DNA from: Guillardia theta CCMP2712
Lineage: Eukaryota > Protista > Cryptophyta
Length of the DNA: 64,000 bases
Reading direction: 5' to 3'
Assembly: GCF_000315625.1 (NCBI RefSeq)
Contig: NW_005434608.1
Location: 83,449-147,448 of the forward strand
Shown here: one piece after another, positions 30,350-36,800 of the stretch
How positions within the stretch are numbered: the first letter of the stretch is position 1
How the letters are laid out: the number at the start of each line of letters is the position of its first letter
Made by a program: the position numbers and the translations under genes
The notes under the pieces: model-generated
Databases searched by the model: none
Seen by the model: only the letters and a program-made list of their open reading frames with translations
What the model was told of the DNA's origin: nothing

Positions 30350-31170
30350 CATGATCCGCCCCTCCCGCGTTGCCCGCGCCGTCCCTGACGGCTGCGTTAC
30401 ATAACGGTTACAGAACGTTGCACTTCAACGACCATCCCGGATGATCGCCCGGCCGCGCCGGGCCGGGCCCCGGTCAGGGTACCGTACCGGGCGGCGTCAC
30501 TACGGTCACTGCCTGGCCGAGTCACTGCCCGGCCGTGAGTACTACGGTAAAGATCGGACCGTCTGCCCGGCCAGCCTGGCAGGCCGGGCCGCGTCGCCGC
30601 CGACTCGGACTCCGGCCCCTCGTACCGGGCGTACCCGGCGCACGGTTCAACGGTTCATTCGACGGCGAGGTCCGATCGGCGGCGCCGGCCGCGGGCGGCG
30701 TCCCCGAGTCCCGCCGTCCGGTGGCGGGCCGCCAGGCAGCCTGACGGTCCGCCGGTCAGTCGGAGTGACTCGGGCTGCCGGGTTCCCTCGGAGCGGCTGA
30801 CCGTCGGACTGTCCTGGCCCAGCTGAGCGCCCGGCCGGGCCGGCCCCGGCCGGAGCCGGGTCAAGCCTTTCAAGTTTCTGTTTCCGATGTCCCAGCCGGG
30901 GGCTCGGGCACGACGGTTCCCGAGTCCCGGTCCCTGAATCGACTAGTACGGTCACTGGGTAGGGGTAGGCCGGCCCGCCCGGCCCTTCCGGCGAGACGAC
31001 CAGCCTGGCGGGGGGTGGAATTTTCTTTACTCAAAGTTAAGTTAAAGATCAGTACGAGGACAATGATTTTGTTTGTGTGATGTATGAGGGCCATTCCAAC
31101 AAGCCGATTGTGAACTCATGGCTAACCTTTACTCAAAGTTAAGTTAAAAATCAGTACGAGGACAACTCCT
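30350..31170. promoter_or_regulatory. Large GC-rich island, GGGTAGGGGTAGG and two direct copies of the 37-bp motif in a divergent intergenic region
   Basis: Island at 30350-31015; motif copies at 31023-31063 and 31127-31165. Confidence 0.55.
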
Positions 31171-31479
31171 GGCTTTTTGACTGGCAATCTGGGGAGCTCT
31201 AATAGTTTATTGTTGCGTCTATTCTTGCTTTAATTAATTTTATTCCAAGCTAAAGTAAATGTGCGGTAATGATACGTGTGTACCTGAAAGTTCCTTTATA
31301 ATCCTGCGATCGTACTGTGAAAAAATAAAATAATTTTGTTGCAAGCCTGCGTCAACGGGTCCCTGCAAATCTCTTAGATTGGTGGGGTCCTGGGGTGGTG
31401 TATACGGCCTCCCCCCCAAAAAAATATGGTCATTGTGTTTTATTTTTATAATTCGAGTTTTATTGGACCGCGCAGCGCC

Positions 31480-33372
31480 ATGCCGCCGCACGACCTTTAC
31501 CTCCTAGCAGACCGCCATTTCGTCTCTCCAGAAGCTACAAGACAACGATTCCGATCACATCTTTACAGGGCATCATCCCAGACGCGCTCTTCACGCGGGA
31601 ACAAGTCACAGAATGGAATCCAAGATGCCCATTGCTCTTTCATTCGCAGGCATTCTATCAACTCGATGTCAGTCCTCGATGGGACCAAGTACGCGAGTCT
31701 TGCCTCCCTGCTCTCTTGCTCTCGTCCCTTCGAGGCTGCTCTCACGCGGTCCGCCTTCCAGGTGCTGTTTTTGGCCATAGCATTGCACTGCATACATTTC
31801 TGCTATTTGGGGTATCTTCCGCTGGAAAGCCACAAGCATGTCCAGAAGCTAAGGTTTACCGCTTTAGAGCTGAGGGGAGGGAGCAGCCCCGAGAACATGA
31901 AGGTATCTTCTATCGGTGTGAGAATGTCAGGTGTCGACATTCCTATCCAGAAAGTTAGTGTAGAGGGTTCAGTTCTCACAGCCGACTTTGGCCAGGAAGT
32001 AGCATGGGATGCCTGGTACCTCAACACGAGCTTGAGCAGCATTGAGCTTGATCCTGTTCGCTTCTACGTTGAGAACTTTGATGCGAAGACAGGAAAGTGG
32101 GTCATGGTGGGCTCGTCTTCCTTCTTTGCTTATCTCAACTCGTACTGTTTTATCCACGGCAGATTCCAAACCAGTACGGTCCGAGGACAACAGGAGATTT
32201 TCACAGTCGAAAACAAGTGCGCAAAGCTGCAATTGGCATGTAAAGCCGCTACGTGTATCTTTCTCACATCTATTGTGTTGTGCGGGTTGACTGGGAAGGT
32301 TGAACTGGGACTTTTTCTTTACAAACTGGCTCATATTACGAACTTTGTGTTGTACCTGTGGTGTGGATATAAGGGCTGGTCTTTAGGAGAGCATTTGAAT
32401 GGGAATATTGCCTATGAGCCCATGCTCATTATGTCCATGTTCTGGCTCTGCTCCTACATCTGCATTGGATGCTTTCAGCAACAGTACGTCACCCTCTCCT
32501 TCCAAGTACAAAGCGCCCTTGTCTTGCTAATCTTCCGATACACAGCAGGACGACCGCACTACGGGAGTGTTGATGTTGGGATGTCAATGACAATTTGTCT
32601 CTTGATCTTAACATTTTCGGGAGTATCCGTTCCCCTACTCCAGCTGTGGCAGAAGCGACAGGCAAGGAAGCAGATCATGCCTGATAGGCTTCAATACGAC
32701 CAGGTGTGGTCGTCAGTGTTGTCTGCGTGCGGAGCTGAGTTCGATGAGCTCGAACAACTAGTTCGCAATCATCGGGAGTCATGCTCTGACGATGCACGGC
32801 AGTATTTGCAACATGGCGACCTGTCTCCCTGTCAAACACTTGAGGACTTGTACGCAAACAACGAGCTTGCTACGTTGCAGCTTAGAAGCAGCATATTGAG
32901 GTGGGGAGCAGCCAGTAACGGACAGCTGCACGCGCAGACAGGTGAGGACGGCTCCTACGTGAAGGCGAAAGATGCACAGGCCGAAGGAGGAAAACAAGTG
33001 CATTGGGCTCCAGTGAAGAGGCGGACGAGAGTGGTGGAGAAAGCCATCCGGGTGCACGGGGGAGACTTATCAAGAGTGACGGACATCGTGCGAGAATGCT
33101 TGATCTTCGATGAGGTCGGAGACATTGCTTTGTGCCTACAGGAGATCGTCAAGGACCAGAGCGTCGAAGTTGTCCGCATCAAGAATCGCCTGCACCACAG
33201 TTTCGATGCGGAGAGCACGGCAGGGTACAGGGACGTGCTTATAAATCTGAGGATGCTCTCGATGTCCTGGAAGGTGGTAGAGGTGCAGCTTATCCTCAAG
33301 CAGTTTGACGCACTTAAGAGCAAGGATGGGCATCGTCGGTATGTCGCCTACAGGAACAGCATCTGTGCGTGA
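31480..33372 (+). CDS. Multi-pass membrane protein with a C-terminal RelA/SpoT-type (p)ppGpp-synthetase nucleotidyltransferase domain, intronless
   Basis: VKRRTRVVEK, TDIVR, RIKNR, GYRDV, VEVQL and GHRRY motifs in the expected order. About 6 hydrophobic helices and a beta-rich extracytoplasmic segment lie upstream. Start codon uncertain (31426, 31480 or 31666). Confidence 0.82.
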   Translation: MPPHDLYLLADRHFVSPEATRQRFRSHLYRASSQTRSSRGNKSQNGIQDAHCSFIRRHSINSMSVLDGTKYASLASLLSCSRPFEAALTRSAFQVLFLAIALHCIHFCYLGYLPLESHKHVQKLRFTALELRGGSSPENMKVSSIGVRMSGVDIPIQKVSVEGSVLTADFGQEVAWDAWYLNTSLSSIELDPVRFYVENFDAKTGKWVMVGSSSFFAYLNSYCFIHGRFQTSTVRGQQEIFTVENKCAKLQLACKAATCIFLTSIVLCGLTGKVELGLFLYKLAHITNFVLYLWCGYKGWSLGEHLNGNIAYEPMLIMSMFWLCSYICIGCFQQQYVTLSFQVQSALVLLIFRYTAGRPHYGSVDVGMSMTICLLILTFSGVSVPLLQLWQKRQARKQIMPDRLQYDQVWSSVLSACGAEFDELEQLVRNHRESCSDDARQYLQHGDLSPCQTLEDLYANNELATLQLRSSILRWGAASNGQLHAQTGEDGSYVKAKDAQAEGGKQVHWAPVKRRTRVVEKAIRVHGGDLSRVTDIVRECLIFDEVGDIALCLQEIVKDQSVEVVRIKNRLHHSFDAESTAGYRDVLINLRMLSMSWKVVEVQLILKQFDALKSKDGHRRYVAYRNSICA

Positions 33373-33821
33373 ACAACCGGCGCGGCTTGGGTTGGAATGA
33401 TCATAAGTTAGTGGAACCATATGAAAATGGAATCCGATTGTAGTTTGTGTTTGATCTAAGTTTGTTGATTGTTGTTTTAGTACACTGACTGATTTTCTGC
33501 GGCGGGCGGGTGACTCAGTGACCGGGCCGGGTGAGAGACTCTCACTGGGCTCGATGATCATCAGAGTCGGAGTCAGAAGTAGTAGTACCACTGAAACTTT
33601 ACTCATCTCCCACAATTTCTTGCTATATCCGGCATATTAAATGTGGTGGAACGATCAATTAACCCACCAGTGTCCAGTTGTTCTATACTCTGGGATTCAG
33701 GGGGTATTGATATAAACTATTTTATATGGTAGAAAAAAAGATACTACAAAGAAGTAACTAAACTTGTGTTGTATTCTCGTTCCTATTGTACTGCTGGACG
33801 CCTTGCATAGCCTTGCGAGGC

Positions 33822-36800
33822 ATGGCAGGCAGGCTGAGGGGAGAGGAGGGCGAGCATGGCGAGAGCGCCGCCATGCTCTCTGAAACTGAGCCAAGAAGGA
33901 ATCCAGTGAACCTAGCTAGACCAGAGCTCTCCTTTGTTGAAGGCTGTGTACCTCGAGGAGTGAAGCAAAGGTGCGAAAACGTGGAGGGCGGACAAAAATT
34001 GCCATCGCAAGGGAGGAGTGAGAGCACGAGGGGGAGGCTGAAGAAGATCCCTCGCGGAGCATCCCTGCATGGTCTCTTTGTGCTCTTTGTCTCTGTTTGC
34101 ACCTGGAACTCCTTCGCATCAGGTTTATACAGAGATGGGTATGAGGTGGTGGAAACCGGACCTGGAGGCTTCTTCGGCGCGTTCCTTGACAATGACTCAG
34201 GAACAGCATGGTTCGGCATCGACGACAGCCCTGCACGACTGATCAGAGTGGATCTGAACACCATGACTGTCACAGGGAAGCTGGAGCTCCGCAAAGACGA
34301 GCAGCGGCTGTGGTGCATGGTGAAACATGGAAACTTTGGTTACATTGGGGTAGAGTCGCCAGGAGGGAGGCTGGTTGGAGTGGACCTGGACAAGATGGAG
34401 CGTCTAGGATATGCAACGGCGTCCAACTTTCCCCTGCTCGCTGGAAGAGTTGTCGGCAACTACGGTTACTTCTCTGCCGGATCGAACCCCGCCACGGTCA
34501 TGCGCCTGCATCTGCTGCAGATGCAGCAAGGGAAGTGCCAGGACTGGGATCAGTGCAGGTTCGAAGTTGCTCTGCAGCAAGGAGAGGAAGCAGTGCGCTC
34601 GATCTTCCCGGATGCGAACGAGCAGCACATTTTCCTGGCCCTCTACACCTCCCCTGGTAGGATCGTCAAGCTGGCGATTCCGAGCTTGACCCGAGTGGCG
34701 CATCTGGATCTTGCTCCTGGAGAGGACAAGATCCTCAGCGGAGTCCGGTACGGTGACTATGGCATCTTCGGTACTGCCACGTCACCTGGTCGGCTGTTGA
34801 AGATTCACCTCCCCAGCATGACGAAGACAGCCTCGCTGACGCTGGTGGACGGGGAGGACAGGCCGGCTACCATCATCGTCAAGGGGAGGCATGCCTTCAT
34901 CGGGTTCGGCTCTGCCTGGGCTGAAGGGACTTCCTCCGTGCTCAAGGTGGACCTGGAGAGGATGGTGCGCGTTAGCGCCATCATCACCAAGGAGGGTCAG
35001 ACTTGGCTCTACACGGGTCTCGGGTACGGCAAGTACGCCTTCTTCGGTACCCGGGGCACCGCCACCTCCAAGCATGCTACCATCCTGCGGGTCAACACGA
35101 ACCCCACCTTCCCCGGCATCCCCATCCCCCCCGTCTTCAACCGCAGCGGCTCCGACTACATCGAGCTCAACTGGCTCAGGGAGTACCCCGAGTACCACAA
35201 CGGCGGCGCTCCCATCATTGGCGCTCGCGTTCTCCTGCGGCCTTCGAACCATCACGACTGGACGAGCGAGCATGTGTACGGCTATGCTGCTCCTGACCCC
35301 GCAGCTCCCAAGAACAGGTCGAGCGTGCAGCTCCCATTGCACCTTCTCCCTCCTCCCTTGCTTCTCTTGTTCTTTAGCCATTTACAACCCCCCTCCTCCC
35401 TCCTCCCTCCTCCCTCCTCCCTCCTCCCTCCTCCCTCCTCCCTCCTCCCCTCCTCCCTCCTCCCTCCTCCCCTGCTTCCTGGCAGATACAGTGACCAAAT
35501 CACTTCTCTCTCCCCCCCCTCTCCTTCCTTCTATCACCCCGCCTCTCTGCTTCCGTTCCGAACCACAATGATGTCATGCCAGGATTTCGCGTGTCCATGA
35601 GGAGCCGGTGGACCTCGAAGCGCACGGGTATGTGGCGCGGGTGGATCAGTTGGACGCAGAGAGCGGCTACAAGTTCGCCGTCATCCTGACCAACGAAGTG
35701 GGTCCGAGCCATAGGAGCAGGAGCTCGCTCGAGATGAGAACTGCCGTCTCCTATGTGGTGGAGCTCTGCTGGGTCGGCTTCGTCCTGCTCGTCTGCGCCA
35801 TCCTCGGCGCCATCTACTACTTCGGGGTGAGCCTTGCTCCCCGGTTGGACGCGCTGTATTGGGACAACGAGAGCGAGGAGGAAGCAGGGAGCTCCCTGCT
35901 GAGGAGCGGGAAGGTCTTCATCTCCTCTACCATCCCACTGACTGGCTCCTCTGCTGGGGTCGACCTGCCGGAGGAAGGGAGGAAGGGACTGAGAGCCGTG
36001 GCGGGCAAGGTCGCCAACTCCTTCTCCTCGTGGATCAGTCAGCCCAACGCCGTCCGGAAGCTGCTCGGGGGGGTGACCCTCTTCTCCGTCCTCGGATCTT
36101 CTTCGGTCGCCCTCCAGTACCTTCTCATCGTCTTCGTCCACCAGCAGCAGCCGTGGCTCGAGAAGCCCTCCCGCTACCTCTACAGCATCGTCACCGTCGT
36201 CTGTAGCGGCGCCCTTGCATGGGCCATGGCCTCTGCCTTTGCGGCTCTTCAGGTGGCGCAGGGCGGCCGAGATTGAGGAAATCTGATGAAGTTGACAGGC
36301 CAGAGAGTACGACCATGCGCGAAGAGTTGCCGTCGCGTCGCTTCTCGTTGCATGGGCGACCATGATCTCTTCCATCACCGTACTGCTTTTCTCCTCCTCC
36401 TCCTCCTCCTCCTCCTCCTGCTCCTCCTCCTGCTCCTCCTCCTGCTCCTCCTGCTCCTCCTGCTCCTCCTGCTCCTCCTCCTCCTCCTCCTCCTCACCAA
36501 GCATCGCAGGTGATCATTGCATGGACCTCTTCTCATCTCTCCCCTGATACGGTAAGTGCAAACATGCCGAGCCGAGATTCGAAGGGGCAGGGGCATATAG
36601 CTCATTTGAAGAGAAAGGGGGAAGAGAAGGAGGGAGGGAGGTCGTGGGGAATGACGAGGAGGAGGAGTTGAGGAGCTGATGAGCATGGTAGGCGGCCATC
36701 ACTGCATGGGCCTCATCTTTCTGCCTTGTCTTCGGCCTGGTAACTCTCCCCCACAAACTGCTCGGCCTGACTCTTCCAAGCTGGGGGTCGTCGTGGAGAC

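Follow-up and report, generated by a model that had tools for sequence, protein, structure and literature searches.

The question raised by this locus is whether a eukaryote can encode, alongside the plastid enzymes of the stringent response, a membrane receptor that carries an enzyme of the same kind. The stretch of DNA analysed here (the window, 64,000 nucleotides in all) is C66:83449-147448 of the 87-Mb, 669-contig genome of the cryptophyte Guillardia theta CCMP2712, and the gene concerned occupies positions 31480..33372 of its forward strand. The gene is expressed and shows purifying selection, belongs to a large paralogous family, and encodes a protein with a clear order of domains, a RelA/SpoT-homologue (RSH) fold and conserved catalytic residues. 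Our analysis makes it probable that this protein is a signal-regulated, six-pass membrane pyrophosphokinase, composed of an outer beta-sandwich, a stalk and a cytosolic enzyme of the RSH fold.

By its predicted structure and by family profiles, the C-terminal domain (amino acids (aa) 454-628; 32839..33363, forward strand) is an alpha/beta domain of the RSH-synthetase fold, albeit a divergent one. In the PDB, every significant fold match of the isolated domain model (predicted local distance difference test score, pLDDT, 80.9) is an RSH synthetase. Foldseek gave RelP (6ex0, E 1.8e-5) and Tas1 (6ox6, E 1.9e-5), with the exported Streptomyces small alarmone synthetase (SAS) 8vx3, RelQ (5ded), Rel, SpoT and CapRel among the further top matches of the fold searches, all top matches being RSH synthetases; its probability was 1.00 for RelP, Tas1, RelQ, Rel and CapRel, and the full-length model gave the same outcome. 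VIA-align, an exhaustive fold scan of 48,161 chains that is independent of Foldseek, placed YwaC (Z 11.5), RelP (11.0), RelQ (10.8), Tas1 (10.7), Rel (10.5) and CapRel (9.5) on the domain, with RSH enzymes spanning Z 8.3-11.5 and the next other fold, RsfS, at Z 6.0. A library of viral structures returned phage RelA/SpoT- and Tas1-type domains as top matches. On the sequence side, a profile of eight sequences found Tas1 in the PDB at E 0.0012, and one of 100 sequences found Tas1 at E 5.5e-5 and Bacillus subtilis YwaC at E 0.013 over 107 columns. The significant alignment with Tas1 spans about 43 residues, i.e. the donor-ATP segment common to all RSHs, and therefore says nothing on the acceptor. 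Two lesser signals were set aside: the single-sequence search, which found Tas1 alone at E 0.25 and is too weak by itself, and a match to MonBI/MonBII (E ~0.1), a chance similarity of one 32-residue helix that was gone with the deeper profile.

Curated family models tell less. A scan of the window protein against Pfam and NCBIfam returned no family even at E<=10, HD and cyclase domains included, and a few relatives score E 6e-4 to 0.058 (14.8-20.5 bits, with a cut-off of 27) against Pfam RelA_SpoT (PF04607); two relatives carry the UniRef label 'RelA/SpoT domain-containing protein'. The initial annotation of this gene, made from the letters and a list of open frames, had proposed a RelA/SpoT synthetase domain and the absence of an HD domain. 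Both proposals hold, but the RelA_SpoT profile with which it suggested checking the domain does not match the window protein, and it was predicted structure and family profiles that supplied the match to RSH synthetases.

The same annotation had listed synthetase motifs, all of which are present: K513-x3-R517-x3-K521, D535-I-V-R538, K568-N-R570, G582-Y-R-D585, E601-V-Q603 and H618-x-x-Y621, together forming a catalytic-motif block at aa 509-621 (33004..33342, forward strand). Conservation was measured across 100 aligned, diverse relatives, and the motif columns are the most conserved of all: K513, R517, K521, D535, R538 and E601 are invariant (100%), and nearly so are N569 (97%), G582 (98%), Y/F583 (97%), R584 (99%), Q603 (91%), H618 (96%) and Y621 (93%). 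According to HMMER alignments, from which all residue equivalences were taken, K513...K521 corresponds to the K..K of the YwaC segment 'RVKS...NK', D535 to the Asp of 'DIAGVR', known from RelSeq and RelQ as the Mg-binding Asp of RSH enzymes, G582-Y583-R584 to 'GYRS' and E601-x-Q603 to 'EIQ'; the block is also in register with the K-S-R-E-R...K...D-L-A-R segment of Tas1. Besides the Mg-binding Asp, the family thus keeps the catalytic Glu, the Lys/Arg residues that bind phosphate and the Tyr used for stacking. As far as sequence can tell, such a pattern of conservation fits an active rather than a decayed enzyme, and the acceptor is not a property that can be read from it.

The gene behind this domain is a real, expressed nuclear gene of a cryptophyte. 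An unbroken open frame runs from 31426 to 33372 on the forward strand (648 aa), and the coding sequence within it starts with the ATG at 31480 (31480..33372; 630 aa plus stop). Transcript-like contigs from three different studies (X9, 31462-33386; X6, 31476-33474; X1, 31488-33497) are colinear with the genome, with 0 differences and no joints, and define an mRNA-like, intronless transcribed unit at 31462..33497 on the same strand. Transcript depth is zero in both flanks (31228-31441 and 33582-33795), and raw RNA-seq reads (X22) accumulate over the 3' end of the gene (33154-33581). Taken together, the colinear and jointless contigs, the silent flanks and the reads establish that the gene is expressed and free of introns. 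The contigs start between 31462 and 31488, and the earliest ATG within them is that at 31480, in agreement with the start chosen in the initial annotation; the alternative ATG at 31426 lies upstream of, and outside, the transcript contigs. Orthologues exist in a metagenome contig (P0001, 93% identity in a full-length alignment) and among transcripts of Hanusia phi (P0002, 51% identity over 92% of the length), and a further Hanusia transcript, P0003, aligns at 32% identity. Against P0001, the ratio of non-synonymous to synonymous substitution rates (dN/dS) is 0.37 overall, with small substitution counts. The RSH domain (0.16) and the beta domain (0.18) fall below this value, and the N-terminal tail (0.62) is the fastest-evolving part of the protein. 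Within the limits of these small counts, both folded domains look to be under purifying selection.

How is the catalytic domain built into the rest of the protein? A full-length AlphaFold2 model (mean pLDDT 88, predicted template-modelling score 0.77), for which 16 family units were aligned, and a Kyte-Doolittle hydrophobicity scan, from which the transmembrane (TM) segments were taken, agree on one layout, and they bear out the receptor-like, multi-pass arrangement that had been proposed from the letters: TM1, beta domain, five further TM helices, helical linker and C-terminal domain. A basic N-terminal tail (aa 1-90, pI 10.5; 31480..31749), presumably cytosolic, leads into a signal-anchor helix, TM1 (aa 91-112, 31750..31815; hydrophobicity peak 1.95, helix 37-58 of the model). 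There follow a beta-sandwich of about ten strands (aa 119-242, 31834..32205; pLDDT ~90), which would be extracytosolic, and the bundle of TM2-TM6 (aa 248-390, 32221..32649), seen by the scan as well as by AlphaFold2. In the model, TM6 continues without a break into a stalk or 'signalling' helix on the presumed cytosolic side (aa 391-432, 32650..32775), such that TM6 and stalk are a single helix of 67 residues (model 312-378, i.e. aa 366-432); the stalk has conserved residues at D402, Y406 and W410. All these features lie on the forward strand. Fold comparisons of the TM bundle yielded TMEM45A (Z 9.1), a urea channel (Z 7.6), a succinate-acetate permease (Z 7.5), G-protein-coupled-receptor-like structures and rhodopsin, all of which were rejected as falling below the stated noise level of the tool for helical bundles.

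An even number of six helices puts both termini on one side of the membrane and the beta domain on the opposite one. The C-terminal domain is most readily placed in the cytosol, and the beta domain outside, since the enzyme needs ATP, five Lys/Arg residues directly follow TM6, an N-x-S/T sequon is found in the beta domain at N182 and a beta fold of this type is usually extracellular. A hydrophobic signal peptide, looked for by hydrophobicity, was not found within the first 84 aa, in line with the earlier statement that a plastid presequence is lacking, and by the same measure only, a bipartite plastid leader appears to be missing as well. In the otherwise fast-evolving tail, the stretch C-S-F-I-R-R-x-S-I (31630-31660, aa 52-60) is kept in the Hanusia and metagenome orthologues. 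Its R-R-x-S is a basophilic-kinase consensus and may, as a speculation, be a site of regulatory phosphorylation.

The beta domain had been called discoidin-like by eye. Its all-beta fold stands, and a galactose-binding or discoidin-like character is plausible from comparisons of model and sequence. VIA-align matches the domain to the C-terminal beta-sandwich of the galactanase BT0290 (residues 651-778) with Z 7.1 and a root-mean-square deviation (rmsd) of 2.8 over 89 residues. A profile of the domain (A6) finds as its best PDB hit, at a non-significant E of 0.76, a GH92 mannosidase, in whose CBM32/F5-8-C-like module the stretch 'Y.LTS....DP..W.L.GS.DG..W' is paired with 'Y..TS....DPVRF.VE......W..VG' of the family. 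The relative P0151 matches Pfam F5_F8_type_C (PF00754) at E 0.04, a family to which the window protein itself has no match.

The gene is one of many. A profile of the enzyme domain has about 105 matches in the G. theta genome, about 78 of them at E<=1e-19, and it is this number that makes the gene a member of an expanded receptor-like family rather than a single odd gene. Many matches are paired about 2.1 kb apart inside open frames of about 1,000-1,100 aa, and two-unit genes, in which the layout of beta-sandwich, TM helices and RSH-like domain recurs, account for most of the matches. The N-terminal module (N-module, i.e. beta domain plus TM helices) is homologous between proteins with a single unit and those with two, and in long proteins such as P0009 and P0169 the entire unit of N-module and RSH domain has been duplicated in tandem. 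Even where the N-module has diverged beyond the reach of phmmer, relatives have 3-11 predicted TM segments. The single-unit form of about 630 aa is found in three genes only in the genome: the window gene, GUITHDRAFT_104824 on contig C18 (37% identical) and GUITHDRAFT_111476 on C52 (31% identical). Local tandem and inverted clusters occur at C30:477-530 kb, C206:46-57 kb (inverted pairs) and C1:834-843 kb, and some pairs score identically, which indicates recent duplications. The long unbroken frames suggest that most family members are intron-poor, and intron-poor genes are unusual for G. theta. Among relatives, the N-module is 17-56% identical, as against 24-64% for the enzyme domain.

Beyond this genome, an exhaustive profile search collected 4479 cluster representatives with E<=1e-3, of which 1539 reach E<=1e-10. 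All named members are cryptophytes (Guillardia, Hanusia, Hemiselmis and Rhodomonas), and the remainder are unnamed metagenome or transcriptome proteins. Neighbours in the ESM-Atlas are eukaryotic clusters without Pfam families, the few of them with a taxon label coming from diatoms and ciliates; a bacterial RelA_SpoT cluster lies further away. Compared by shape, the whole architecture recurs in one eukaryotic cluster (template-modelling score 0.61 over 398 residues). When 185,579 bacterial and archaeal genomes and IMG/VR were scanned for the motif pattern of profile A3, a method of limited sensitivity, no relatives came up. In other Atlas clusters, which have no recorded taxa, the shape of this C-terminal domain is joined to TPR or ankyrin repeats; as modelled, such fusions suggest that the RSH-like domain is a portable effector module.

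The genome also contains a second, more divergent set of open reading frames (ORFs) of 800-1,070 aa, which match the ATP-donor half of the domain only (C4:1079035-1079217, C229:10026-10202, C71:208808-208969 and about 15 similar places, as well as L018:373-2829) and for which Pfam yielded no matches. Residues 724-785 of L018 align with columns 66-127 of profile A5 with an hhalign probability of 95.9% and E 5.6e-9. The ORF ends there, and the remainder of the domain is probably in another exon. From its sequences, this set is possibly a further RSH-like family of the genome.

Does the family then belong to the plastid pathway? A search of the genome with PF04607 finds two genes only, on contigs C47 and C24, both spliced and both with an HD_4 domain; these are the expected plastid-type long RSHs. 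One could imagine that the window protein is a plastid-associated (p)ppGpp synthetase in the periplastid membrane, the plastid envelope or a membrane continuous with the endoplasmic reticulum (ER), i.e. a divergent addition to the plastid RSH pathway. Cryptophyte plastids are situated within the ER lumen, a membrane protein inserted into the ER could reach the outer plastid membranes, and the two canonical RSHs, with their HD and synthetase domains, could degrade its product. Yet the N-terminus shows neither a signal peptide nor a bipartite leader, hydrophobicity first appearing at aa 84; about 100 paralogous domains far exceed anything known for plastid RSHs; and the domain is nearer to SASs and Tas1 than to long RSHs. 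We therefore regard a plastid role as very improbable.

Topology, enzymatic activity, ligand gating and acceptor are the parts of our picture that we infer, and a pyrophosphokinase receptor would combine them as follows. TM1 and TM2 would hold the beta-sandwich, probably a sensor of the glycan-binding type, on the side of the membrane away from the cytosol. On the other side of the membrane, K513, R517, K521, D535 and R538 would bind ATP-Mg, and E601 would serve to move the beta,gamma-pyrophosphate of ATP onto the 3'-OH of an acceptor whose ribose stacks on Y583, which is how RelP, RelQ and Tas1 work. Occupancy or clustering of the outer domain could be passed on by the helical bundle and by the single long, rigid helix of TM6 and stalk, and thus switch the enzyme, a working mode akin to that of a receptor-type nucleotide cyclase with the chemistry of an alarmone synthetase. 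A guanine or adenine nucleotide might serve as acceptor, in which case the messenger would resemble (p)ppGpp or (p)ppApp; the 3' end of tRNA seems less likely.

A number of observations weigh against this picture. R538 stands three residues past the Mg-binding Asp, as in Tas1, and not at the canonical five; the arginine of RxK is absent from the family; canonical 'EIQIRT' has become E-V-Q-L-I-L; and the His of GYxSxH is lost. Neither the window protein nor most relatives attain the threshold of any curated RSH model. The ligand-binding character of the beta domain depends on three weak signals, and the positive-inside count is ambiguous, with about eight Lys/Arg on the proposed cytosolic side and about seven on the other. 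Furthermore, a stand-alone hydrolase of the Mesh1/SAH type was not found in the genome, HD_4 being confined to the C47 and C24 genes, which leaves the turnover of a messenger unaccounted for.

Some of these points would be explained if the RSH-fold domain were not a pyrophosphokinase at all, but used the nucleotidyltransferase (NTase) scaffold for another chemistry or served as a nucleotide-binding regulator on a six-helix transporter or channel. The missing match to a curated RSH model and the several altered canonical motifs point in this direction, as does the weak likeness of the TM bundle to the urea channel and the succinate-acetate permease, although both of these matches lie within the helical-bundle noise of the tool. 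Given that the invariant residues are precisely those which RSH enzymes use for ATP-Mg binding and catalysis, and that RSH enzymes stand 4-5 Z units over other NTase-like folds, we consider a different activity quite improbable.

A more substantial alternative accepts the chemistry and changes its purpose. Under it, the protein would be an immune or conflict-type receptor with the RSH domain as a toxic effector, in the manner of toxSAS, CapRel and Tas1, which arrests or kills the cell by pyrophosphorylating tRNA 3' ends or by draining ATP and ADP into (p)ppApp. The hydrolase gap favours this alternative somewhat. The best sequence match is a toxin, Tas1, even if that match covers only the donor segment which all RSHs have in common, and CapRel and the RSH domains of phage polyvalent proteins are near in fold. 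The huge expansion in tandem and inverted clusters, a sensor module more divergent than the enzyme domain and the fusions to TPR or ankyrin repeats likewise have the appearance of a conflict system, and RelA_SpoT domains are known as N-terminal effector domains of fungal NLRs (e.g. PMC4986451). On the other hand, a sensor that faces outwards would be unusual for detecting an intracellular virus, and the gene is expressed in ordinary cultures, with purifying selection on both folded domains. With a pI of ~8.8 the domain is mildly basic only, and net charge is uninformative with respect to a tRNA acceptor. On balance, a toxic effector appears unlikely, and a signal-regulated pyrophosphokinase is the reading with which we proceed.

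A few further features of the window lie next to the gene. Upstream of it, two stretches of about 40 nucleotides (31025-31066 and 31127-31166) recur in many unrelated transcript contigs, with a summed depth of up to ~1,500, in either orientation and with differing flanks, which suggests a short dispersed repeat or an element shared by untranslated regions. Downstream, on the forward strand, an ORF of 604 aa (33786-35600), with transcript contigs starting at ~33800, had no match in a Pfam scan. It contains repeated G-x-F/Y-G...SPG-R-L/I-V motifs, whose sequence is suggestive of a beta-propeller, and a Pro/Ser/Leu-rich tail of 'PPPSSLL' repeats.

What would a signal-regulated pyrophosphokinase at the cell surface mean? 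Signalling of the (p)ppGpp type in eukaryotes is otherwise known essentially as a plastid inheritance, carried by soluble long RSHs. (p)ppGpp has been reported in animals and other eukaryotes, and how these make it without a known synthetase is a question under review (PMC10107265). With a large, expressed and selectively maintained family that has a membrane-embedded RSH fold and retains the catalytic residues, alarmone-like chemistry outside the plastid and its wiring to surface sensors become testable. As a tentative proposal, about which doubt still prevails, cryptophytes and probably other protists may have an undescribed class of receptor-type pyrophosphokinases that make an alarmone-like nucleotide, of the (p)ppGpp or (p)ppApp type or of a new one, outside the plastid, as a surface-to-cytosol messenger or in a defence pathway, with about 100 catalytic domains in G. 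theta. If true, this would be a eukaryotic second-messenger or defence pathway founded on the chemistry of the stringent response; and should the domain be a toxic effector instead, the theme of bacterial toxSAS and CapRel and of fungal NLRs would extend to the membrane receptors of algae. In either case, the curated models of Pfam and NCBIfam overlook a family with thousands of representatives.

In a search of the literature, neither this architecture nor the family turned up: where RSHs of algae and plants are reviewed, plastid long RSHs alone are dealt with, and the toxSAS survey omits the family. Since the catalytic fold is known and two relatives have been annotated automatically, it is not categorically new; its sequences point to a divergent, so far eukaryote-only clade of RSHs fused to membrane receptors. 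The nearest known enzymes by fold are RelP/YwaC (SAS2) and RelQ (SAS1) of Firmicutes, which share the synthetase fold (Z 11.5 and 10.8, rmsd 3.0 over 143-146 residues), have the K...K, D, G-Y-R and E-x-Q motifs in register and equally lack an HD hydrolase domain. Identity to these is only 13-21%, however, and the algal protein fails the Pfam RelA_SpoT threshold and is without the Arg of RxK, the 'IRT' after E-x-Q and the His of GYxSxH. Moreover, a SAS is a stand-alone soluble synthetase of about 200-250 aa, whereas the algal domain is the C-terminal quarter of a nuclear-encoded, eukaryotic protein of 630 aa with six TM helices. Tas1, the (p)ppApp synthetase toxin of type VI secretion in Pseudomonas aeruginosa (6ox6), is similar in sequence (E 5.5e-5), in fold (Z 10.7) and in its D-x-x-R spacing, but it is a toxin that a bacterium secretes and that is matched by an immunity protein, whereas the algal protein is integral to the membrane. 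The plant and algal RSH1-4, including those on C47 and C24, belong to the same synthetase superfamily and are encoded, in G. theta, in the same genome. In contrast to these canonical genes, which are spliced and have HD_4 and an above-threshold RelA_SpoT domain, the window gene lacks an HD domain, a regulatory region of the TGS/ACT type, any Pfam match, introns and, judged by hydrophobicity, a targeting leader, and its product is membrane-embedded.

Precedents for synthetase-only RSH domains outside the plastid of eukaryotes, and for their attachment to a receptor scaffold, are provided by 'divRel' and by the fungal NLRs. The former are divergent, unplaced eukaryotic SASs of fungi, Dictyostelium and two diatoms, for which transmembrane forms are not mentioned (Atkinson et al. 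2011, PMC3153485). The published descriptions of both groups differ from the family described here in that they include neither a transmembrane architecture linked to a beta-sandwich nor an expansion in cryptophytes. With the receptor-type adenylyl and guanylyl cyclases of class III, finally, there is a functional analogy only, their catalytic fold being unrelated and a cyclase domain not being detected here. In this functional sense, the arrangement proposed for G. theta has a counterpart in, for example, the receptor adenylate cyclases of trypanosomes, in which an extracytosolic ligand domain, membrane helices, a stalk and a cytosolic enzyme are combined in one protein and which likewise form large lineage-specific families in a protist.

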